A stretch of 64,000 nt of DNA from Hypanus sabinus. Lineage: Eukaryota. The stretch's first letter is position 1; every line of letters begins with the position of its first letter. Both the position numbers and the translations under genes were made by a program. The DNA lies in contig NC_082709.1 of assembly GCF_030144855.1 (NCBI RefSeq), positions 53,196,001 to 53,260,000 of the forward strand, written 5' to 3'. Positions 1,629 through 59,099 of the stretch are shown piece by piece. The notes under the pieces are model-generated. The model was not told the DNA's origin. It saw only the letters and a program-made list of their open reading frames with translations, and did not search any database.

Positions 1629-1976
1629 NNNNNNNNNNNNNNNNNNNNNNNNNNNNNNNNNNNNNNNNNNNNNNNNNNNNNNNNNNNNNNNNNNNNNNNN
1701 NNNNNNNNNNNNNNNNNNNNNNNNNNNNNNNNNNNNNNNNNNNNNNNNNNNNNNNNNNNNNNNNNNNNNNNNNNNNNNNNNNNNNNNNNNNNNNNNNNNN
1801 NNNNNNNNNNNNNNNNNNNNNNNNNNNNNNNNNNNNNNNNNNNNNNNNNNNNNNNNNNNNNNNNNNNNNNNNNNNNNNNNNNNNNNNNNNNNNNNNNNNN
1901 NNNNNNNNNNNNNNNNNNNNNNNNNNNNNNNNNNNNNNNNNNNNNNNNNNNNNNNNNNNNNNNNNNNNNNNNNNNN
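1629..1976. other. Assembly gap (348 N)
   Basis: Run of N. Confidence 1.
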
Positions 1977-6000: not shown

Positions 6001-6324
6001 CCATTGCTATAAGTGGTAATTGTTCCAATAATTTCAAGTACTAATTGTAATAGATGAAAGTGGCATTGTATAGATACAGATATCAGAACCAATTCTGCTT
6101 ACTAATACACACAAAATGCTGAAGGAACTCAGCAGGTCAGGCAGCATCTATGGCAAGGAATAAAGAGTTGATGTTTCCGGCCGAGACCTTTCATCAGAAC
6201 TCTGCTTACTTTTGTTCCCCTCTCAGGAATAAAGCCTGATCTCTCCCTTTTACCAGTGGATCTTAAAATGATGATGCTATTCGGAAGAAGCACTGCCCAG
6301 ATCACAGCTCACTCAGCAGATTTC

Positions 6325-6483: not shown

Positions 6484-9400
6484 ATGAAAACCTTCCTGCT
6501 CGCCATCGCTGCCGTGCAGATCCTCCACTGCTCAGGTAGGTACAGGGGAGAGTGGTGATAATCCTGCTAATGAGCTCTAGTTGGCAACACTTCACATGTG
6601 TGCAAGAAGAATTCACTGAGGTTTGTTGGAATGTCTTGTACAACTTTCTCTTTTTCTCTGCAGGAGTGCCAAGCACCAAGAGAGCTCTGAGAGCATCAGT
6701 TATAAAGCTGAATGAAATGACCGAGATCCCCAACCTCTGTGGTGTCACTGACAGAAGAGGGAAGAATGTAAGTTTGCTCTGTTTCCAGATTCTTCACAGG
6801 TGATGCTCTTTTAACAGTGTTACTAAGTGTAGGTAGACCCATCATTGGTAATTGGTTCATTATAGACACAAGTACAGTGAAGTGCTTCTACTTGAATGCC
6901 ATGGAGACAGGTCATTCCATACATAAGTAAGATTATTCCAGTCATATTCACACAGGAGCTGTACATGATGGGCATGTAACTGGCCAGTTTTTGTTCAGAT
7001 GAAAACTGTGTCTATTATTTTGGAGATTTGAATTGGAACTAGGGTTCAGATTAGAAAATGGAAATTTCCAGATGTTGAGATTTGGGGTTTATTTCTGTCT
7101 TGGTTACCTCCAAATCCCATAATAGGATAACCTGTTTGTTAGATTCTTTTCATTATTAACTCCTGCATTTCAAACATCTCTGGCTTAATGGTTAAAGAGG
7201 TGATTTAGTTATTGGACAAATTATATCTCATGCCTTTGCCATTGATGATTCTGAGTACCTCAGGGGGGGCAGACCCTGAAAGTAAAGACCTGTGTTCTGA
7301 GTTTTATCTGTTTGGAAATGGTGACACATTAACTGTATGGTTTCCTATCATTAGGTCTACCGCACGGGGAAACTGTCATACAACGTGGATCTAATATTTT
7401 CAGTGAAAGAAACTGTCTGTTCCAAAAATTCCAGACTGGAATTTGATGATCGCAGATGTCACTTCCGTCCCAAAAAGACTGCGGTAAGACCTGATTTACA
7501 TTATAGCATCCAAACCACTGTTTCTACTGAGGTGTATCACAAAAAGGCTATGAATGTTTGAATGATCGATAGAGGCATGAAAACTGAGCCATTTGATAGA
7601 AAGGGCTAGTTATACTGCAGTTAATCATGGAATATGCCAGTGGTACTGACTTAAATCATAGAAATAGCTGTGAGTGGTGAATTATATCAAAGAAATTACT
7701 GCAGGCACTGAATTATTATCTTACCAAAGGGTCATTAGTATTGAGTTATTTCATAGCAATTGCCTATTAATTACATTGTGCAATAAAGAGCAACACGTAA
7801 CAATAATTTCTCTTTTGCTATCTTCACAGGCAAAAGGAATCTGCAAAAGCAGTGTTGAATACTTTGCTGGCAAGGTTGTTGACATTGATGTGGAGTGTCG
7901 AGGTCTGAGGACAATTGGTAGCAACAGTCATTCATTAGAGTCGAGCGAAAACAGCATAGAGGTAAGTTCCTTGTCATACAAGACAACACTCACAAAATAC
8001 TGAAGGAACTCAGCAGGTCAGGCTGAAATATGGAAATAAATAAACAGTTTTCGGTTAAGACCCATCTTGTGTTTTTGATACAGTTCAGTTTAGTGGGCCT
8101 TTGTGATCTGGATCAGGTTTATAACTTTGCTTACTTTACATGGAGAATGCCGGGAAGCACTGGAGCAGACCTCTGAGCTCTATTTTATTGTTTCATTGGA
8201 TGCACAGATGTCAGGAAACATCAGAATTCTGTCAAAACTTCCTTGTGCAAAGTGTGCTGTACATTAGACAGTAATGGACACAATGCTTCTCTGAAATATG
8301 GTTCTGTTCAAGTCAATAGAATGGAATTTCAGAAGTGTATTGCATGATGCCTACCTTACAAGACTGGGTGTTTAGAGTTTGCAAATGAGGTCCAATTGCA
8401 GTCAGAGCTAAGCAAACAATACCTCTCTATTGATGAAGGAATAAGACAACAGAGTTCATTGCGTGACTGGCTGTATTGCTATTGCTAGGATATCCAAATC
8501 CCGTGCCCTTCCTGAGCCAATTCAACTACAAGTGAATATTAAAGATACAGTATTAGTGTCTCCTCATTTCTTCTTTTATTTTAGGATAAACTTTATCAAC
8601 TTTATTTGCTTTGTGCATTTTCATGTAAGGGAATTAGCAGTGGCGTGTTTGCGTGACATGCAACAAAAGACAATAGTCAATAATTCTCAGTTAGAAGTTT
8701 GACTTTTGAGGTAATACCTTTTGAGGTAATACTTTTGAGGCATTGAATTAAAGAACCTCATCTAGCATTGTTCTAATCCTAATTATATTAATATTTTATA
8801 TAGCTGAAAGCCTGGAGAACACCTGTTCGAGAAGTCTATAAACGTAAGTACTGTTTGCCAGATTATTAATAATGCAGCATCAACACCTGGACTTTACCAG
8901 CTGGATTACAATTTGTCACAACAATGATTCAGAATTAGTTCCCATGGAGTCATTAATAGGACCTTCAGCCCAAATCACCCATGTCAACCAAGTTGGCTAT
9001 CAGAGTTTGTCCTATTTGCCTACATTTTAGCGATATCTCTCTAAACCTCTGCTATCCATGTAACTGTTTAGATTCCATGCATGTTCCCACCACGAACATT
9101 AAGCTGACCTGTCTGTGATTCCCTGGACATGCCCCATTCCCCTTTTCAAATAAAGGCATTTATACTACTTGAGTCCTCCAGTACTCTGCAATTACTTGAA
9201 CATTGCTGAGCACTGGAGAAATCCATTGCCAACCAAAAGATTTTCAATTCAGCCTAAACAACAGAGATATTTTATTATTTTGTTAATGTTAGGTCAAAAT
9301 AAATTAATATCTTGGTTTCATAGGTATAGCTGCTTCCATTGACATCATCTACTAGGTCATCATTGTTAGTTCTTTTGGGTGTAGAGCAGAATATAGGCTA

Positions 9401-9711
9401 ATTAATTTCAGCAATCATGAGCTATCCATTGACTCCACAGTCTCACTCTATCTGGGATATATTGACTGAAGTGGTACTGTAGAATGTGTCATATTTAATA
9501 AGGACTTTCCATTTCACTTAGTCATTGAAGCAACATAGATATTTATAGAGTTAGCACATAAGCATACTTTCATTTAGTTATATGGTATCTGTTGCTTACA
9601 GATTATTATGATAGATTTCAAATATTAAGAATATCCTCTGGTACTTAGATTAAACAGGAGACTTAATATTTCATTACAGGTGTAAAACAAGTCAAACGAA
9701 TCGTTGGTTGA
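6484..9711 (+). CDS. SPP2: SPP2/Spp24-like secreted cystatin-fold protein, copy A (predicted 162 aa, cationic C-terminus)
   Basis: All introns GT-AG. Exons: 6484-6535 (MKTFLLAIAAVQILHCS/G signal peptide), 6664-6767 (VPSTKRALRASVIKLN...GKN), 7355-7483 (VYRTGK...FSVKETVCSKN...CHFRPKKTA), 7830-7961 (AKGICKSSVEYFAGKVVDIDVEC...SSENSIE), 8804-8843 (40 nt), 9680-9724 (stop TGA 9709-9711), last exon from 9854 (predicted UTR). ALRASVIKLN, FSVKETVC, C-x17-C and the following Ser/Glu patch match Spp24 as I recall it (ALSASVVKVN, FSIRETTC, CRSTV...C, SSEE). Exons 1-4 are secure; the tail depends on which acceptor exon 5 uses. The symbol means SPP2-like paralog, not proven orthology. Confidence 0.82.
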
Positions 9712-10092
9712 AGAATCTTCAAATGTAAGTGTACACTGTTTTGTGTAAGACACTTCAATGATCTTGATCACCTTTATCAATAATTATAAAACGCTAAGTT
9801 CAGATGGAAATCATCTAATTAAAAATGACCATTCTGTGATTTCTTTATTCCAGGAGAACAAGAAGATTCAAAAGTCGAAAACCAAAGATGAATGAAATGC
9901 CTGAAAAATCAAGTGTAAACACAAGAAGACCTCATTTAGTTTAAATATTTAATCAATTATACAGTACATGTTCATATTTAGTGGGGGTTCTGGGGATTCC
10001 TGACTGTAAATTTTGCTGTAACTGGAAGATTCCATAGATTGTATATGTTCTGTCATTCAGTTTGTATTGTAATCCTGCATTCTGTGAATCAA

Positions 10093-10098
10093 ATTAAA
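10093..10098 (+). terminator. Putative polyadenylation signal (ATTAAA) of copy A
   Basis: Same position in the 3' UTR as the AATAAA of copies B and C ('gtgaatcaaattaaaag' vs 'gtggatcaaaataaag'). Confidence 0.6.
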
Positions 10099-10319
10099 AG
10101 TATAAAGAAAATATTTACTCATCTTCCAACTGCTGTTTCTCAGTTCACACAAACCATCCATGCATACATTTGGGTGAAGTGTCCTCAATCTATTGACAGC
10201 TGCTGGTAGGTTTGCTTGTGTAGGGCTTGTGTGGGTTGGGGTGGGAGGATGTAGGAGTATTTGGTGGAGAGGCATTGCAGTTTCCAATCATAAACACTCC
10301 TCACCTTCTCTCTTGTTCA

Positions 10320-29212: not shown

Positions 29213-32200
29213 ATGAAAACCTTCCTGCTTGCAATTGCTGCTGTGCAGATCTTCTACTGCTCAGGTAGGTACTAGCAAGAATGGAACTTCAGGGAGCAGT
29301 GAGTTATTTATAATGAGCTTCAGATAGCAACATTTCAGCCATATGTAAGGAGAATCCACTGAGGTCTCTTGAAATGTCTTTTACAACTTTCCCTCTCTTT
29401 CTGCAGGAGTGCCAAGCACTAAGGAAGCTCTGAGAGCCTCGGTTATAAAGCTGAATGAAATCACTGAGATCCCCAACCTCTGTGGTATCACTAGGAGAGG
29501 AGTAACAAATGTAAGTGCATCCTTGGCTAATTGTGTTTCATAAACTATGTCTGAGTGCAAGTTAATTGGCTGCTAAAACTTGCCCTATGATTAGCTTAAC
29601 AGAAAAAAAAATCTATGGAGACATGATGTTATGTGATAGGGACAACTAATGCAACATTATGGAGATTTGACGCGAAGGAGAGTAGGGTTGATGCAATTGG
29701 TCTGCTGGGAGCCAGTGTAGGCCAGATGGGCTGAGTGGCACAAAACTGTATAATTCTAGGTATAAGTTATATAACATAGAAGATAAGATGGTATCTAAGT
29801 ATTCAACAAGAGCTGAATATTACATTGTGTTCAGCAATTTAATTCTTAATCAGTGTTTCAGTTGTGGACCAAAGTTTTGGAATTAAGATTCAAAGATCTA
29901 TAAGACTTTGCTTTGGAAGTTTCTAAATGCTTTTCCAAATTTATTTGTGTTTTTCCTCCAATAATTAAGGGTTCCTTCAAATTGAATATTCCTATCATTA
30001 TGGTTTTTGTAGTAGTTCTACCGTTGTGCAAAGTAATTCTCTTGTCCACTTTGGTTGATTGTTCAGACACGACCAGTGTAACCCTCAGCTGAAAATAAAG
30101 CCCCTAGCAACTCTAACTTTTATCAGCGTGGTGAAAGAATACCAGACACAAGAATTCATCAATAATCTCTTTTTCTTCCTTCAGACATATCGCACGGGTA
30201 AGCTGTCATACAATGTGGATTTAACTTTCTCTGTGAAAGAAACTGTCTGTTCCAAGAATTCTGGACAAGAATTTGATAATCCTAGCTGCTTCTTCCGCCC
30301 TAAAAACATTGCGGTAAAGTCCAGAGTTGTATCAGATCATGCAAGTCCGTGTATGTATTAGCATCAAAACATGAGCTTTAATTACAACATATTTGATAGA
30401 AATGACCATACGTATGCAGTTATATCAAAGTAAAAGCTAAGAATTGAGTTAGATCACATTAATTTATTGTCTTGCTTGGAATAATGAATAATTTCCATTC
30501 ATTATGCTTCATTCCAACAGGAGAAAGGCTTTTGCAAAAGCCATGTGGAATTTTTTGCTGATAAGGTAGCTGACGTTGATGTGGAGTGTGATGGTCTGAA
30601 GACAGTTGACAGCGAGAGTGACTCAACAAAATCGAGTGAAAACAGTATTGAGGTAACTGCATTCATACAATTCAGGACAAAGGAATTTCTAACACAAGAT
30701 CCTTTACTGAACATTTCACTGTTTATGTATGTTGAAGATCTAAAAATAAGTACCTTTATCTTACAGTCACAAAGCAAATCAAAAGAAACATCGCTTGAGG
30801 AAACTTCAAATGTGAGTATTAATCAGTAGTTTATCAGATTCATTTTTCTTGTTGATCTCAATTGTTCATGATGGGGTGATTATAATTGTTTCCAATGAAA
30901 TGTTAAGTTCTCCATTAGGAATAGTGGATGAGACAGCATGTTATCCCAGTCTGATGTGTAGGGAGGGGATCCTAATATTAGATTTCAGTGTGTGATGAGT
31001 TGCTTCTCTGCTGGAGATGAACTGAACATCAGCAGAACAGGACGACAGGAGAAGTGTCTGTCAGACTCTCATCACTGAGATTCACCAAGTACCAATCCTT
31101 CCATGGATTCAATAAAACAGATGGCATGATGCCTGCGCCACTTATTGTTGGAATATCCATTCACTTTGCTCCAGGCACTTTATTTGAATATCAGTGTACT
31201 ATTTAGAGTAGTCTTTTTATTGAAGCTTCTGCAATCTAATGCAGAATCTAATGGGATCATCTTTCAGAAATGTCAGGATTGCTAATCTTGGTCTAATGTT
31301 ATAAATGTTCTTGCTTTTATAGGAGAAAAGTAAATTGGAAGAAACAGCACTGGAAATATCTTCAAATGTAACTTTAATTTGGGATTGATGTTTTTCAATA
31401 GTTTGTGAAAACTAGATTGATCTGTCAGAATAGAGTCTGAGAATCTTACATCATTCTCGGCCAAATTCCAGACAGTGGGTGAGCGAAGATAGAGAGAATA
31501 TTGGATATTAGCTTCCACCTCAATGCATTTTCCTGTAGAACACTGTTAGCCTTGATTCCGTTAATATCCAACAATTCACCAATCCCTGTTTTGAATGAGC
31601 TTGTCATTGAGACTCCACAGCTCCCTGGGGGTAGCAAATTCCAAAAATCACCACCTGAGTTTCACCTCATTGGCAAAGCTCTTATTTTGAGACTGAGCCA
31701 AGCTCTCAACTCCTAAGACAGGTGAAGACCCTTCCCCTGATAACCAATCATGCCCTCTCATAATTTTGCTCATGCTAAAGCACCTCTCAATCTTCCAATC
31801 TGTAATAGATAGTCTATCGTACTTGAACTCTCCTCATAGGGCAGATACACTATTCTGGAAACTATACTTGTATCTCTTTGCTGCATCCTCTTGCTCAGGC
31901 ATATCCTTCTTCAGAAAAGTAGACCAAAACAACACAATCCTCACCAAGGTTTGATACAATTGAAGTATTCTTCTTTTCAAGTCCTCTTGCAATAAAGGCA
32001 ATTTGCCTTCCCAATGGTCAGCTGCAGTTGCTGCTGAAATGCCCAGAGTGAACCAAGACTCCGTTATAGTTCAATATTTAATACTTGAACAAACTGAATT
32101 TTTCAGTTTATATCTTTTCAAAATTCCTCACTGTCCTGTACTAAACATATAAATATTATTTCCATACAGGAAAAAGACAAATCAAAAGAGACATCTCTTG

Positions 32201-51250: not shown

Positions 51251-54200
51251 ATGAAAACATTCCTGCTTGCCTTTGCTGCTGTGCAGATCCTCTGCTGCTC
51301 AGGTAAGTACTGGGGAGAACGGAAAACCAGAAAGCAGAAAGTTGTTGGTACTGAGATTCAAGCAACAACATTTCACCCAGGTGTGAGAAGAATTCACAGT
51401 ATATTTTTGGGATACCTTGTATGACTTCCCCTCTCTTTCTGCAGGAGTGCCAAGCACCAAGGAAGCTCTGAGGGCTTCAGTTATAAAGTTGAATGAAATC
51501 ACCGAGATCACCAACCTCTGTGGAGTCACCAGGGGAGGCGTGACAAATGTAAGTGTGCCTTTGGCTAATTGTGTTTCACAAACTATGGATGTGTCTGAGT
51601 GCAGGTCAGTTGGCTACTAAAACTTAACCTAAGAGTAGTTTAACAGCAAAGAACAAATCAAAGGAAAGACAATGTTATGTGATAGGGAGAATAAGTTGCA
51701 ACATTATGTGGATTTGATGAGAGGGAAAGTGGGATTGATTGGATTGGTTTGCTGGGAGCCAGTATAGGCCTGAAGGCTGAGTGGCCTCAAACTTGATAAT
51801 TCTAAGTAAGAGATATATTTTAAGATGAGATGAAGTCTTAAGTGTTCGACATGAGCTGAATATTATATCATGTACAGAGTGGTCTGCTATTTAACTCGCC
51901 ATCAGTATTTGAGTTGTGGAACTTTGATTGGACCAAAGCTTTGGAATTAAGCTTGGAAGTTCAACCAGTCTTTGATTTGGAAGTCTCTGAATGCTTTCCC
52001 AATTTTGTTTGCTAATTTCCTCCAATAATTAAGTGCTCCTGAAAACTATGTAACTATGTATCCCTATCATGATGGTTTAAATGGTAATTTTATCATTGGG
52101 AAAATTAACTGCTTTGTCCGTCTTGGTTGATTTCTCAGACACTATCCATGTCATCATTTGCTGGAAATAAAGCCCTGTGTAACTCTAAGTTTTATCAATC
52201 ACTGTAAGAACACCAGATGGAATAATTCACCAATAATCTTATTTCCTTTCTTCAGACATATCGCACGGGTAAACTGTCCTACAGCGTGGATTTAATGTTC
52301 TCTGTGAAAGAAACTGTCTGCTCCAAGAATTCTGGACAGGAATTTGATGATCCCAGCTGCTCCTTCCGCCCTAAAAACATTGCGGTGAGTCCAGAGTTAT
52401 ATTAGATCTTGCAAGTCCGTGTATGTTTTAACATCAAAATACAGGCTTTAATTACAACCTTTTTCATAGAAATGACCATACATATGCAGTTATATCAAAG
52501 TAAAGGCTAGGAATTGAGTTAAATCATAATCATGTTGGTTTTGTGTCTTGCTTGGAATCATGAATAATTTCCATTCATTATGCTTCATTCCAACAGGAGA
52601 AAGGCTTTTGCAAAAGCCATGTGGAATTTTTTGCTGATAAGGTAGCTGACGTTGATGTGGAGTGTGATGGTCTGAAGACAGTTGACAGCGAGAGTGACTC
52701 AACAGAATCGAGTGAAAACAGTATTGAGGTAACTGCATTCATACAATTCAGGACAATTGAATTTCTAACACAAGATCCTTTACTGAACATTTCACTGTTT
52801 ATGTATGTTGAAGATCTAAAAATAAATATCTTTATCTTACAGGCACAAAGCAAATCAAAAGAAACATTGCCTGAGGAAACCTCAAATGTGAGTATTAATC
52901 AGTAATTTATCAGTCTTTTTTCTTGTTGATCTCAATTGTTCGTGATGAGGTGATTATAATTGCAATGAAATGTTAAGTTCTCCATTAGGAATAGTGGATG
53001 ATGTTTATTACATTTCAGTGTGTGATGAGATTGTTCTCTACTGAAGATGAACTGAGCATCAGCAGAACAGGACTACAGGAGAAGTGTCTGTCAGACTCTC
53101 ATCACTGAGATTCACCAAGTACCAATCCTTCCATGGATTCAATAAAAAGATGGCATGATGCCTGCCCCACCTACTGTAGAAATATCCATTCACTCTGCTC
53201 CAAGCATTTACTGTAGCCAGGCACTTTTTTTGAATAGCAGTTTACTATTGAGGGTAGTCTTTTTATTGAAGCCTCTGCAATCTAATGCTAAGTAATGGGA
53301 TCATCATTCAGAAATGTCAGGATTAATAATTCCTCATTCATAATTTATCATTCTGGTGTTAATTGCTGGTAATGTGGTCTGGTATCTTCAGTTTCTCAAT
53401 AAGATGTGAAACCTAGGTTGATCTGTCTAGGCCTGTTCCAGACAGCGGGGCTGAGAAGACGGAAAATATTGAATATTAGCTCACGCCCACCTCAAGCTAC
53501 TTTCCTATAGTAAAACAGTAAGCCTTGATTCCCTTAACATCCAACAATCCACCAATCCCTGTCTTGAATGAACTCATGACTGAGCCCTCACAGCTCTCTG
53601 GGATAGAGAATTCCAAAGATTCACCATTTGAGTTTCAACTCATTCCTCACTGGACAAGCACCTATTTTGACACTGTGAGCCAATCTCTCAATGCCTTAGA
53701 CTGACAGAAACATATCTACATTACCAATCAAACCCTCTGATAGTCTTGCTCATGGTCAGGCAATCACCTCTCATTGTTTTAACCTGTAATGATTATCCAA
53801 TTTATCCAACACAATTCATCCAACTTATTCTCTTCTCATGTGGCATATGCATCTTCCCAGGAAACTATACCATTGCTGTATCCACTGCCTCATGCAGATC
53901 CTTTTTCAGAGAGCAGACCAAAACTATACAATACAGGGATCAATGCAATTGTAGTATCCCTCTTTTCAAATCCTCCTGCAATAAATGCAATATGCCTTCG
54001 CAATGGCCTGCTGCATTTGTTGCTGAAATGCCCAGAGAGAACAAAAACTCCTTGATAATTCAATATTTAATACTTTACTTTTATTGTCACCAGACAATTG
54101 ATACTAGAGCATACAATTTGATTCTGCATTTTGAGCTCCCTGAAGTACAAATTGAAGTAAATATAATAAAAATGTAAATTATAAATCATAATTAAAAAAT

Positions 54201-57076
54201 AGAAAAGGGAAAGTAAGGTAGTGCACGTCAGGTCCGGATATTTGGAAGGTACGGCCCAGATCCGGGCCAGGATCCGTTCAGCAGTCTTATCACATTTGGA
54301 AAGAAGCTGTTCCCAAATCTGGCTGTATGAATCTTCAAGCTCCTGAACCTTCTCCTGGAGGGAAGAGGGGCAAAAAGTGTGTTGGCTGGGTGGGTCGTGT
54401 CCTTGATTTTCCTGGCAGCACTGCTCCGACAGCGTGTGGTGTAAAGTGAGTCCAAGGATGGAAGATTGGTTTGTGTGATGTGCTGGGCTATGTTCATGAT
54501 CTTCTGCAGCTTCTTCCAGTCTTGGACAGGACAACTTCCATACCAGGTTGTGATGCATCCTAGAAGAATGCTTTCTACAGTGCACCTATAAAAATTAGTG
54601 AGGGTTTTAGGGGACAGGCCAAATTTCTTCAGCTTTGTCAGGAAGTAAAGGCGAACTGGGGATTTTTACTTGTGCAAACTATGGATTTTTCCATTTATAT
54701 GTTATCAAAATTCTTCACTGTCCTGTACTAAACATAAAAATATTATTTCCATACAGAAAAAAGACAAATCAAAAGAGACATCTCTTGAAGACTCAGCTGA
54801 TGTGAGTATAAATGGAAAAAAATTCAGATGATCTTTTTGACCTATGTCAAAAAGATGCTACGTAAATATGTTAAACATCTTAGATTTAATTGTGCCAGAA
54901 TAGAGGGAGAGTGGGTGATTTAGACTATAAGATATAGGAGTAGAATTAGGACACTTGGCCCATTGAAACTGCCCCACTTACTCTAGGTCAGTGCATTGTG
55001 AAAGGTATTGCGAAGTTTGATTCCTTTGGGGAAGTTTGACAGAGGGGCTCCAATACAGAGAATGAGCTTGCTTCCCCTCAAGGATAAAGTATCAACAAGT
55101 GATATTGACAAGATTGGGTGCTGGATATGAAGGCAATGTTTTACACTCACCAGATACAGGGACCAAGTGTTGACACAGAGCAGCTTCAATATATCCAGTG
55201 CCAATTAATGGATTGAGAGTGACATTTTCCCCAAATTATCTACTGATCCCCACACCTCACATTACCTAGGCAATGCTGATTATTGTACGGAATGTAATCA
55301 TTGTGGTGAACACTTCTCCACTGCAATACTGAAGCACAAATTGTGATAAATCTAGGTTTACATGTAATTAAATCATTAAAGGCTTTGTTCAAAGGTTACT
55401 CTACAAATTTTCATTGATTAACATGCTGAGCATATAAATATTGATATTTTCATGCAGGTAAAGAGCAAGTCAAAAGAGACATCAGCAAAAGAGTCTTCCA
55501 ATGTAAGTCTAATCATGGAATTTTTATCCATTGATTTTCAACCAAAATACATGGTGAAACCTAATTTGGGCAAACATAATTAAATGACTACCTAGAGCAG
55601 GGAGAGGATGGCATATTAATGCACAAATTCTCCAAAACGTTCTCTATTCATTTCCTGAGGATGACCAACTTCACCCTGAATGTGAGTTAGTTCTTCACTT
55701 TATTTTGAAATAGAATTTGAAAGGGCACTGTTACCTGGGGTCAAACATGGTTTGTGGGAAGACATAACTGGTGTTTTCATGAAAGGGGGAACCATTGCAT
55801 TTTCCTAATTTAAATGAATAATTACTGGCTCAGTGTCTATATATGTATGGTGCAGGAAATATCAGAACTGAGGATGTCTGTTGGTCAGGGTTGACTATGA
55901 AAGTTACGTCCCAGTTGTCTATGTGTTAAACAAGCCAATGCACAAGCCAAGGCAGTATGATATGGAGAGCCGACTGTTGTCCATGTAGCAGGCTCATCCT
56001 CCTCATGCAGTTGATGAATCAAAAGAAAAGGACAGCGGAGACTGATTGGCACCATTGGTGTTGCAAGAGTTGCCAGCCAGCTTTGAACTCAACATAGGAT
56101 TTCCTTAGAGACTGCAGCTCCAAAGCTTTCCTTGTGGTTTATTCCCGCACCCTGTCCTGTGAGTCGCTATAACCACAAAGCAGTGGAGGTTTGAGGTCAG
56201 AGATTTCCTTCTCCAAGATATGCTGCCAAGCACAGCTGACATGCCCCATCTGTCCAAAGGACTTATTTCAAGGCACCAGTAAACCATCTTTGCCCCTTCT
56301 CCTGTCAGTAGAAACGGTTCCACTGGGCTTAGTAGCTAAGGCACGCATGAAGGCCAGGAGCTGAACTTGGTTGTCAGAACTATTTGAGATGCACACCATT
56401 AGTAGCATTTAATAGGTAGTGGGAGCTTGTCTCCATTATACACTACATTATCCAGCTATAACAGTCAAAAAGAACCGATGATAGCACATCATGAGCCACT
56501 GAAGGAATAAATCATGTGTCTTAGATTAATAGAGTCACAGAGTTATACAATGCAGAAACAGTTCCTCTTGCACTCCATGGAAACAACACCTCATCTATCC
56601 AGCCTCTCCTTATAACAAACCCTGCAGTACAAGTAATACATTTATAATTTTTATTGGCACCTTCTCCAAGATGATGACGTCCTTTGTAATAATCTATCTT
56701 AGAGTCTTATTATACTAACATTTTGCTGAAATTCAGACTGATTGTATGATAAGGATCTCTCAGTGTTGTGCAATTCTGATTTTAAAGTGGTTCTACTTAA
56801 TAATTTACGAACTAAATCTCATTGAACTGTGCATCTGAAAACGTTCTAAAATGCAAAATTTCTTCTTGTAAAACAGATGAAAAGCAAATCAATGGAATTA
56901 TCACTGGAGGAGCCTTCAAATGTAAGAATAAACTGAAGCTTTGTGTCTGACGTGATCATCATTAAAACTAATGACAGAACATTGACGTCAGAGTGAGCTC
57001 AGTCCAGCTGAAAATTACAAACCTGTTCATCTTTCTATTCCAGGAACAAAATGAGAAATCGAGATCCCGTCACTGA
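51251..57076 (+). CDS. SPP2: SPP2/Spp24-like protein copy C (predicted 209 aa; four 15-aa S-x-E-rich repeats)
   Basis: Exons, all GT-AG: 51251-51302, 51445-51548, 52256-52384, 52597-52728; microexons 52843-52887 (AQSKSKETLPEETSN), 54757-54801 (KKDKSKETSLEDSAD), 55458-55502 (VKSKSKETSAKESSN), 56877-56921 (MKSKSMELSLEEPSN); last exon 57044-57076 (EQNEKSRSRH*). SPP2-like paralog. Confidence 0.88.
54076..54665 (-). mobile_element. Rex1/Babar-like LINE 3' fragment in intron 5 of copy C
   Basis: LPSLDSLYTTRC...HPANTLFAPLPSRRRFRSLK...NSFFPNVIRLLN C-terminal motif; absent from copy B. Confidence 0.8.
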
Positions 57077-57293
57077 CCATGAATGAAACTTCACAGAGTC
57101 TGAACTCAATGTGAACACAAGAAGACCTCATTCAGAATCTACAAGATGTTAACAATTGTACTGTACTCACTCATATTCAATACTGAGGGGCCTGGAGCTC
57201 CTGACTGTACATTTTGTTGTACATTGGGGATTTGATTGTTTGTAAATGTTCTGTCCTTTGCTGTATATTATTGTTTAATATATTGTGGATCAA

Positions 57294-58332: not shown

Positions 58333-59099
58333 ATCTCCTGGTGATGTATCTCCTTTTTCTGTTGGAATCTCCTGATATGTTGGCTAGTTTGCTGCTTTAA
58401 GATTAAGGTCTGGTACTGAATGAGTTGGTATGCATCCTGGGCTGCTTATTTCAACTGCAACAAATCTGAAATCTTTGGAATGTTCAAATTGTTTTTTGTT
58501 TATTCTGGTTAATTCTCCAATCAAAGGAATGAAACTGTGGGTTCCATGAGATTGTTTAGACATATTTTGAAATGAGATATCATTGAAATGAACTCTTACC
58601 TCATTACAGCAACTCTAATATTAATAAACAAGAAATTCTGCAGATGCTGGAAATCCAAGCAACACACACAAAAATATTAGAGTAACTCAGCAGGTCAGGC
58701 ATCTTCTATGGAAATCATTAATCTGTTGCTGTTTACCAATTACACTGTTTCTGGACTGGAAAGGAAGTGGGAAGATGCTAGAATGAAAGGTGGGGAGGGG
58801 GGAAGGAAGTGATAGGCGAAAGCAGGTGGGTTGGAAAGAGAAGGGCTGGAGAGACAGGAATCTGAAAGGAGAGGAGAGTGTGCCACAAGAGCAAGGGGAA
58901 GGTGTAGGGCACTCAGGGGGAGGTGATAGGCAGGTGAGAAGAGGCATGAGCCAGAGTGGGGAATAGAAGAAAGTGAAGGAAGAGAGCAATTTATTTTTTT
59001 CTTGTTTGGTGGGTAAATATCCAAAAGTGTACAGTTGAGTATATCTCTTCAGGTTCGTGTACCTCCTCCCCAATTTCAGAAATTAAAGGACAGCAGATG

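Follow-up and report, generated by a model that had tools for sequence, protein, structure and literature searches.

An ancient basic-tailed Spp24 of sharks and rays, made by a frameshift in an acidic repeat and probably at work in mineralising cartilage

In bony vertebrates, secreted phosphoprotein 24 (Spp24, the product of SPP2) has a basic, Arg-rich C terminus that follows a Ser-rich stretch (Debiais-Thibaud et al. 2026, PMC13188829). The same study described an expansion of spp2 in cartilaginous fishes, tied the spp2.3 clade to mineralising chondrocytes, placed the spp2 cluster of the stingray Hypanus sabinus on chromosome 4 and stated that the Spp2 proteins of the catshark Scyliorhinus canicula, with the exception of spp2.1, have no Arg-rich C terminus. 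Here we analyse a 64,000-nucleotide stretch of the H. sabinus genome (NC_082709.1, positions 53,196,001 to 53,260,000 of the forward strand; "the window"), which holds three tandem Spp24 (SPP2) paralogs on the same strand, copies A, B and C. The conserved spp2 tandem cluster is marked by synteny with sh3bp4, arl4c, nme9 and vps8. Our subject is copy A, a member of the spp2.3 clade whose catshark counterparts are spp2.3s1 and spp2.3s2 (s1 and s2 below). Overall, it is likely that copy A represents an old and conserved elasmobranch subtype of Spp24 with a basic tail made by a frameshift, and that this tail would serve to bind anions in mineralising cartilage.

Copy A resembles s1 and s2 in subtype, in sitting in a tandem spp2 cluster, in its signal peptide and cystatin-like domain, in the 5-nucleotide (nt) shortening of its first micro-exon and in a tail of the form ...KR.TRPGVYKRVKQIKRLV...; the shark tails enter the last exon (...TARDFKRTQ) and the s2 unit is duplicated, whereas the stingray tail stops after IVG and is joined to a basic domain. 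The published analysis (PMC13188829) groups s1 and s2 with the acidic spp2.3 copies and makes no mention of a frameshift, of a lysine-rich or basic spp2.3 tail or of an antimicrobial function, and a literature search on Spp24 and frameshift returned nothing relevant. Copy A shares with the canonical Spp24 of bony vertebrates a signal peptide, conserved cysteines, a C-x17-C loop and the Pfam family PF07448, and these proteins are its best structural matches. Unlike canonical Spp24, copy A has no Ser-rich or S-x-E tail past its linker, its counterparts are expressed in chondrocytes rather than liver, and its basic tail is reframed S-x-E repeat DNA, not the ancestral Arg-rich region. In cathelicidins (PF00666), too, a signal peptide precedes a pro-domain of cathelin/cystatin fold, which has two disulfides, and the C-terminal peptide is cationic. 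Their genes have four exons, with the mature peptide in exon 4, whereas copy A has seven, with the tail in two micro-exons (5 and 6). Chemerin (RARRES2), the second-best match to copy A in the PDB (8XGM, E 3.5e-4), also has a cystatin/cathelin-like fold, and its activity is governed by its C-terminal tail; the two tails are unrelated in sequence. Finally, divergence of paralogs by frameshift is known, and somatic frameshifts in CALR exon 9 turn an acidic tail basic. In those tails, as in copy A, acidic codons rich in GAA, GAG and AAA become K/R-rich when read out of frame; the shift in copy A differs in being germline, fixed, kept across sharks and rays and set within a symmetric micro-exon array.

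Gene models of the three copies were made by eye and with a script. Comparison of the first 11 kb with the window by blastn matched copy A (~6.2-10.1 kb) to copy B (~29-35.8 kb) and copy C (~51-57.3 kb), and the 3' part of copy A (9676-10115) aligned to B at 35367-35805 and to C at 57103-57258. In each copy the first four exons measure 52, 104, 129 and 132 nt, encode the signal peptide and the cystatin-like domain, and finish in phase 0. Ahead of its last exon, copy A has just two micro-exons (40 nt and 45 nt), and its features are as follows (slashes mark exon boundaries).

6484-9724 plus last exon 9854..10115, + strand: copy A as a whole, 7 exons
6484..6535, + strand: exon 1, start codon and signal peptide (MKTFLLAIAAVQILHCS-), the latter predicted from the N-terminal hydrophobic helix alone; exact spliced mapping of the database protein P0055; donor gtaggt
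6664..6767, + strand: exon 2, encoding the helix at the N terminus of the cystatin-like domain (residues 22-36 helical in the AlphaFold2 model; predicted local distance difference test, pLDDT, ~90)
7355..7483, + strand: exon 3, beta-strands of the cystatin-like domain; Pfam Spp-24 match with this exon alone, E 6.6e-4
7830..7961, + strand: exon 4, C-x17-C loop and acidic linker ...SLESSENSIE; phase 0 end at 7961, reading ...TCA TTA GAG TCG AGC GAA AAC AGC ATA GAG
8804..8843, + strand: exon 5, 40-nt frame-setting micro-exon, LKAWRTPVREVYK plus 1 nt; boundaries tatatag/CTGAAA...ATAAAC/gtaagt
9680-9724, + strand: exon 6, 45 nt; boundaries attacag/GTGTAA...TCAAAT/gtaagt
9680..9711, + strand: coding part of exon 6, (R)VKQVKRIVG then TGA at 9709-9711, read two bases on from the old frame
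9683..9685, + strand: TAA in the old (acidic) frame of exon 6
9712..9724, + strand: remainder of exon 6, 3' untranslated region (UTR) in batoids and still read as ...FK in most sharks
9854..10115, + strand: last exon, wholly 3' UTR, with blocks kept across paralogs and species

The spliced tail reads LKAWRTPVREVYKRVKQVKRIVG-stop, with its TGA 13 nt before the 9724/9854 junction, and the 162-residue product is identical by exact spliced mapping to P0055, 'secreted phosphoprotein 24-like [Hypanus sabinus]', which was reached by phmmer seeded with exon 3 followed by a family search. The exact product of copy A is already in the NCBI annotation. An earlier reading of the DNA by a model (the original prediction) had given this same tail and stop and had described all splice sites of copy A as intact, and on these points the gene model agrees with it.

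The tail of copy A is an acidic S-x-E repeat read in another frame. The 45-nt micro-exons of copies B and C encode units of the type xxSKSKETSLEESSN (e.g., SQSKSKETSLEETSN), and exon 5 of copy A is the homolog of such a unit minus 5 nt near its 5' end. Its 3' two-thirds align to the unit, both with MAFFT and in the catshark transcript alignment, leaving a 5-nt gap within the first ~13 nt whose exact place is ambiguous. That exon 5 measures 40 nt against 45 nt in B and C, and that about 5 nt were lost from it, had been read correctly in the original prediction; exon boundaries and spliced mapping bear out the first point, and the two alignments the second. A different view of exon 5, as truncated at its 5' end and marked by decay through a TGA at 8805-8807 in the "old frame," was dropped because the gap can be moved within the first ~13 nt. 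Exon 6 is 60-71% identical to the B and C units at the DNA level. Its old frame reads V-stop-NKSNESLVEESSN, closed at 9683-9685 as first described, and still spells KSNESLVEESSN; its new frame reads VKQVKRIVG-stop and spells EKQVKRITGRGIFK. The old-frame TAA at codon 2 of exon 6 is found also in Pristis and Amblyraja and, by eye, in catshark s1 and s2. Rhincodon has an open but decayed old frame, and among the species read that frame is intact only in Heptranchias, where exon 6 gives VKSKSKESLVEESSN unbroken. In line with these findings, the transcripts of s1 and s2 show a 5-nt gap relative to s3-s7 (Alignment S7 of Debiais-Thibaud et al. 2026, PMC13188829), and when translated they give a basic tail for s1 (EVINKRITRPGVYKRVKQIKRLVTARDFKRTQ-stop) and for s2 and an acidic one for s7 (EVETKSIETSIEESPN...).

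The shifted frame of ordinary acidic units is itself already K/R-rich. In the micro-exons of B and C it reads TKQIKRNIA-stop-GNFK, KRQIKRDIS-stop-RFS-stop, KEQVKRDISKRVFQ and EKQINGIITGGAFK (pattern xKQ[IV]KR...FK), with a stop in 6 of the 9 units, mostly at the codon where the batoid tail ends. The cationic character was therefore pre-encoded by codon composition, and a caveat to this effect in the original prediction was well placed, the B and C shifted frames reading KQ[IV]KR. Because a K/R-rich tail with alternating hydrophobics was latent in the repeat, the frame-setting change alone was enough to expose it. Codon composition first produced the cationic look of the tail as a by-product, which was later retained.

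The frameshift predates the split between sharks and batoids. Genomic DNA was read for five species, three batoids (Hypanus, Pristis and Amblyraja) and two sharks (Rhincodon and Heptranchias), and exact spliced mapping gave an exon 5 of 40 nt in all five. Since five assemblies of sharks and batoids share this exon, an assembly error or a private allele, either of which would have undone the original prediction, is excluded; by the same observation, the event is neither recent nor specific to copy A or to this species. A family search found the basic tail in 13 species, in short proteins of 160-171 residues. Besides Hypanus, these are the batoids Pristis, Hemitrygon, Amblyraja and Narcine and the sharks Mustelus, Rhincodon, Hemiscyllium, Cetorhinus, Heterodontus, Pristiophorus, Heptranchias and Scyliorhinus torazame, so that the ortholog alignment originally suggested as a check finds the shifted frame open and the tail basic throughout. 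Conservation between sharks and batoids spans roughly 250-300 million years. In the 13-species alignment, tail residues R153, K155, Q156 and R159 are invariant, and R144, V150, Y151, K152, V154 and K158 are almost invariant; a 12-residue core, VYKRVKQ[VI]KR[LI]V, is near-invariant in 12 of the 13, sharks and batoids alike. Conservation of the tail equals that of the domain. The open reading frame of the tail has been kept for 23-46 codons. It stops after ...IVG in all batoids, whose last exon lies in the 3' UTR, and after ...LIA in the sawshark, and in most sharks it extends through exon 6 into the last exon (...TARDFKRTQ); in S. torazame and in S. canicula s2 the shifted unit is duplicated. 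A C-terminal Gly is present in all five batoid proteins and in a skate transcript described below.

Substitution patterns in the core point to selection on the new frame. Among three batoids, the 13 codons of the core contain six variable sites, distributed over codon positions 1, 2 and 3 as 1:0:5, and none of the six alters the residue encoded in the new frame, the single position-1 change being CGA/AGA. In seven sequences from six species, the 12-codon core counted in the new frame shows 15 codon changes, of which 10 are synonymous; for the other two frames the figures are 4 of 16 and 0 of 15. Between Hypanus and Pristis, identity is 91-93% in the tail exons, 89-94% in the domain exons and 77-82% in the introns. 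The ratio of nonsynonymous to synonymous differences per site (pN/pS) in the domain is 0.2-0.4. The new frame has been kept open and, in the core, is under purifying selection, although the counts are small.

By its domain, copy A is a member of the Spp24 family, with a derived tail. P0055 passes the Pfam Spp-24 model (PF07448; 34.9 bits, cut-off 26, E 1.8e-8), and C43, C74, C87, C100 and C118 are invariant in the 13 orthologs. AlphaFold2, given a 60-sequence alignment, predicts a cystatin-type domain of one helix and a four-strand sheet over residues 20-125 (pLDDT ~90). When this model was compared with the PDB using Foldseek, the best match was 4EYC, the cathelin-like domain of human LL-37 (E 3.1e-4, template modelling [TM] score 0.71 normalised by the PDB chain, 23% identity), followed by chemerin and cystatins F and E/M; TM scores to human and pig cathelin-like domains, normalised in the same way, were 0.67-0.72. 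Against the Swiss-Prot models of the AlphaFold DB, the best matches were Spp24 of chicken, mouse, human and salmon (E 1e-8 to 1e-6), with cathelicidins and chemerin after them (1e-5 to 1e-4). The cathelin-like fold is common to all cystatins and is hence non-discriminating, and the closeness of the Spp24 fold to the cathelin domain was already known for the family. The copy A protein is an Spp24 with a fold near the cathelin domain. S-x-E motifs, of which the paralogs have 2-12, are absent from its tail and confined to the linker SLESSENSIE. A PDB search with the tail gave a single chance-level match.

The tail has a charge of +7 to +12. Its hydrophobic moment is 0.46-0.65 (best 15-residue windows, Fauchere-Pliska scale), and it peaks at 95-110 degrees for 10 of the 11 species; at most ~1.5-2% of shuffles match this moment in batoids. 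Within the core, YKRVKQ fits the X-B-B-X-B-X heparin-binding consensus.

Expression of the catshark counterparts is almost confined to mineralised cartilage, as follows from these values in transcripts per million (TPM) from a 31-sample table.

Meckel's cartilage (catshark): spp2.3s1 1109 TPM, spp2.3s2 2692 TPM
Chondrocranium (catshark): spp2.3s1 373 TPM, spp2.3s2 877 TPM
Vertebrae (catshark): spp2.3s1 1078 TPM, spp2.3s2 2378 TPM
Blood, spleen, gill, denticles, uterus and liver (catshark): spp2.3s1 at most 0.4 TPM, spp2.3s2 at most 3.2 TPM

In the remaining catshark tissues, s2 reaches a maximum of 11.6 TPM, in brain. Both genes are among the highest-expressed members of the family in catshark cartilage, and s2 is entered as "mineralising chondrocytes" in Table 1 of Debiais-Thibaud et al. 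(2026, PMC13188829). For batoids, the same study provides a de novo contig from jaw cartilage of the skate Raja clavata (c117360_g7_i1, TPM 119; PMC13188829), which in the paper's alignment ends ...NENSIEMRARRM..RQVYKRVKQVKRIVG. This transcript proves that a batoid includes the 40-nt exon and splices it at the canonical acceptor.

The course of events was as follows. Before sharks and batoids separated, the first S-x-E micro-exon of one tandem copy lost 5 nt, going from 45 to 40 nt, and the downstream repeat units have since been read two bases on, so that S-K-S-K-E-x-S-L-E-E codons came to specify K-Q-[V/I]-K-R-[I/L]-V. An acidic, phosphorylatable tail was in this way replaced by one of 23-32 residues with a charge of +7 to +12 and alternating hydrophobics. 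Selection subsequently kept the core VYKRVKQ[VI]KR[LI]V. In batoids it also kept the ...IVG stop, and there the cystatin-like domain itself became basic. As to function, we propose that mineralising chondrocytes secrete the basic-tail protein alongside its acidic-tail paralogs, and that the basic tail may tether or modulate the cystatin-like domain, which binds bone morphogenetic proteins, on anionic partners in mineralising cartilage. Such partners might be sulfated glycosaminoglycans, the phosphate faces of apatite or the phosphorylated acidic tails of the paralogs. We think that the tail is not a released antimicrobial peptide. One can speculate further, though with little confidence, that co-secreted polyanionic phospho-tails and polycationic tails are complementary and, by pairing or by competing for glycosaminoglycans and apatite, tune the mineralisation of tessellated cartilage, or else that the tail is released (amidated in batoids) as a bioactive or antimicrobial, Spp24-derived analogue of the cathelicidins.

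Copy A provides a clean and datable case of a new protein module arising by frameshift after tandem duplication: a loss of 5 nt in a symmetric micro-exon array made a basic amphipathic tail out of an acidic phosphorylatable one. It shows how a usable peptide can lie ready in an alternative frame through codon composition. Basic-tailed Spp2.3 adds an unreported functional class to a family recently tied to cartilage mineralisation, and mineralised cartilage, rather than mucus or plasma, is where the protein or a released peptide should be sought.

Several points weigh against the reading of copy A as an ancient basic-tailed Spp24 of cartilage matrix. The expression data are those of catshark and skate, not of Hypanus, and the tail's role as an anion-binding module is a proposal. 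Over the whole tail (exons 5 and 6), pN/pS by the Nei-Gojobori method in three frames is 0.65 and not frame-specific (0.65, 0.77 and 0.65), and the frame-specific signal is limited to the 12-13-codon core, with small counts; a dN/dS comparison in the shifted frame, as suggested with the original prediction, therefore gives a synonymous bias in the core and a non-discriminating value for the tail as a whole. The first 10 residues of the tail are variable, yet basic throughout. AlphaFold2 leaves the tail unstructured, with no confident helix (pLDDT 33-36), and because of this the claim of a helical tail falls back on periodicity alone. Of the amphipathic helix that was originally envisaged, then, the periodicity stands, with the moment peaking at 95-110 degrees, and the helix as such finds no counterpart in the model.

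Ancestry furnishes the last of these points. In a maximum-likelihood tree for the cystatin-like domain, built from 48 sequences, the batoid basic-tail genes form one clade (100/98), sister to all batoid acidic-tail genes (96/95). The shark basic-tail genes group with acidic paralogs of the same species (Pristiophorus 100/96, Mustelus 99/97), and the tree forces at least three label changes. Because of this grouping, a single origin of the tail requires gene conversion of exons 1-4. The catshark spp2 paralogs are 95-99% identical in their 5' region (Debiais-Thibaud et al. 2026, PMC13188829). The tail exons share derived states, such as a length of 40 nt and VYK where the unit has IFK, and we do not favour independent origins of the basic tails. 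On the most economical reading, which the 5' identity of the catshark paralogs makes plausible, the tail had one old origin, which would have been followed by gene conversion of exons 1-4 in the shark clusters. The mature basic-tail proteins have an isoelectric point (pI) of 9.3-11.1, versus 4.5-6.3 for the acidic-tail paralogs. In batoids, the domain of the basic-tail genes carries a charge of +3 to +13 (Hypanus +7, pI 9.3; range pI 8.6-10.2), versus -7 to 0 in the acidic-tail paralogs, and in sharks the domains of basic- and acidic-tail genes are alike. Co-evolution of domain charge and tail appears to be limited to cases in which gene conversion ceased.

The original prediction had gone on to claim that copy A rebuilt the cathelicidin architecture by convergence. 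In its strongest form, this would make the protein a cathelicidin-like host-defence precursor, in which a cystatin-fold pro-piece would release a cationic tail, perhaps by a cut following the conserved [KR]-x-[KR]-R motif of tail positions 2-5; the C-terminal Gly would be amidated in batoids, and the peptide would be microbicidal. We regard this as unlikely. The claim was drawn from the architecture, and the architecture does fit, from the signal peptide through the cathelin/cystatin fold, with 4EYC as the best PDB match, to a cationic tail whose hydrophobic moment of 0.55-0.65 shuffles rarely reach in batoids; the batoid C-terminal Gly and a basic pair at tail positions 4-5 in 12 of the 13 species fit as well. 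The Pfam models separate the two families, however, with P0055 falling below the threshold of Cathelicidins (PF00666; 14.4 bits, cut-off 21, E 0.048) while passing that of Spp-24. The catshark counterparts are cartilage-specific, staying at or below ~3 TPM in blood, spleen, gill, skin denticles and uterus; in contrast to an anionic pro-piece, the pro-domain of batoids is basic; and the tail has a low mean hydrophobicity (0.13-0.28) and no helix from AlphaFold2. Release of the peptide would also meet difficulties, as the candidate cleavage site in Hypanus is W-R, not K-R, and two more KR pairs lie inside the core, which a dibasic-site protease would consequently fragment. Canonical cathelicidins are, moreover, listed for Chondrichthyes (Kordis & Turk 2009), so that there is no obvious gap to fill. 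The earlier interpretation was half right: the frameshift tail is real and selected, but it is ancient and most likely a feature of cartilage matrix rather than a convergent cathelicidin.

It is less probable again that only the removal of the acidic phospho-tail matters and that the basic peptide is a tolerated by-product. Such a view would accommodate the native basicity of the acidic units in the shifted frame, with their stops in 6 of 9 and mostly at the batoid stop codon, as well as the whole-tail pN/pS of 0.65 and the variability of the N-terminal half of the tail. It does not sit well with a 12-residue core that is near-invariant in 12 of 13 sharks and batoids and whose changes are synonymous-biased solely in the new frame. 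A plain stop would have been enough to truncate the protein, yet the frame is open for 23-46 codons, the shifted unit has been duplicated in the catshark, and the batoid domain has co-evolved to positive charge.

Micro-exons are often alternative, and exon 5 might accordingly be a frame-switching cassette, giving a basic tail when included and an acidic or short one when skipped; to our minds this has marginally less in its favour still. The case for it comes from Heptranchias, where exon 6 (L004:7034-7078) is open in two frames, VKSKSKESLVEESSN and EKQVKRITGRGIFK, and where skipping of exon 5 would yield VKSKSKESLVEESSN followed by EHSDDSRH-stop (the last-exon part by eye), a normal acidic tail. 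In Hypanus, Pristis, Amblyraja and catshark, by contrast, the TAA at codon 2 of exon 6 closes the old frame, and skipping would end the protein at ...SIEV-stop; in Rhincodon the old frame, though open, is decayed, and no skipped isoform is present among the database proteins for these genes. A cassette is possible only where the old frame is open, and it is intact only in Heptranchias among the species read. That copy A is an assembly error, a private allele or a decaying copy, as the stop in its old frame and its having fewer micro-exons than B and C might suggest, is very hard to reconcile with a 40-nt exon common to five independent assemblies, intact splice sites, a de novo transcript with the tail, high TPM of the catshark counterparts and a domain pN/pS of 0.2-0.4.

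The neighbouring genes retain the acidic tail and have a short last exon ending ...DSRAQH or ...KSRSRH. The product of copy C is identical to the database protein P0099, which bears the same name as P0055 ('secreted phosphoprotein 24-like [Hypanus sabinus]').

29213..35597, + strand: copy B, acidic-tail paralog with five 45-nt micro-exons, ending ...EQNEDSRAQH
30767, 31323, 32170, 32859 and 35371, + strand: starts of the 45-nt phase-0 micro-exons of copy B
51251..57076, + strand: copy C, acidic-tail paralog with four 45-nt micro-exons; P0099
52843, 54757, 55458 and 56877, + strand: starts of the 45-nt phase-0 micro-exons of copy C

In the copy B micro-exon at 32859-32903, an inner AG at 32861-32862 could act as an alternative acceptor 4 nt in, giving a 41-nt exon that would read RANQMRHHLRSLP. 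A predicted Hemitrygon isoform, P0080, ends ...RANQMRHHLRSLPK, and a Narcine isoform, P0094, ends in ...HVKRIIAGGVFQ, another shifted-frame reading. Frame slippage seems to be recurrent in the micro-exon array. In P0078 (Hemitrygon akajei, 230 residues), the C terminus consists of repeats of NDKSRGRR-like units, which look like the last exon (...NEDSRxxH) amplified to an Arg-rich array, a different route to a basic tail.

The last exons also carry 3' UTR blocks (...ATGAATGAAA..., ...ACACAAGAAGACCTCA... and ...GGATTCCTGACTGTA.ATTTT..TGTAACTGGAAGATTC...) that are conserved in all three paralogs, at window positions 9877-10060 (A), ~35565-35805 (B) and ~57078-57258 (C). The same blocks occur in Pristis, Amblyraja, Rhincodon and Heptranchias and in all catshark spp2.2 and spp2.3 transcripts, and to judge from the sequence they look like a shared post-transcriptional element. 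A ~70-nt element (...cacaaaatgctgaaggaactcagcaggtcaggc...) is present three times on the + strand, at 6104-6176, 7976-8049 and 58653-58734, with 77-83% identity; two of the three lie in or just upstream of copy A, and the element is probably an interspersed repeat resembling a short interspersed element (SINE). A run of 348 N at window positions 1629-1976 marks an assembly gap or masked sequence.

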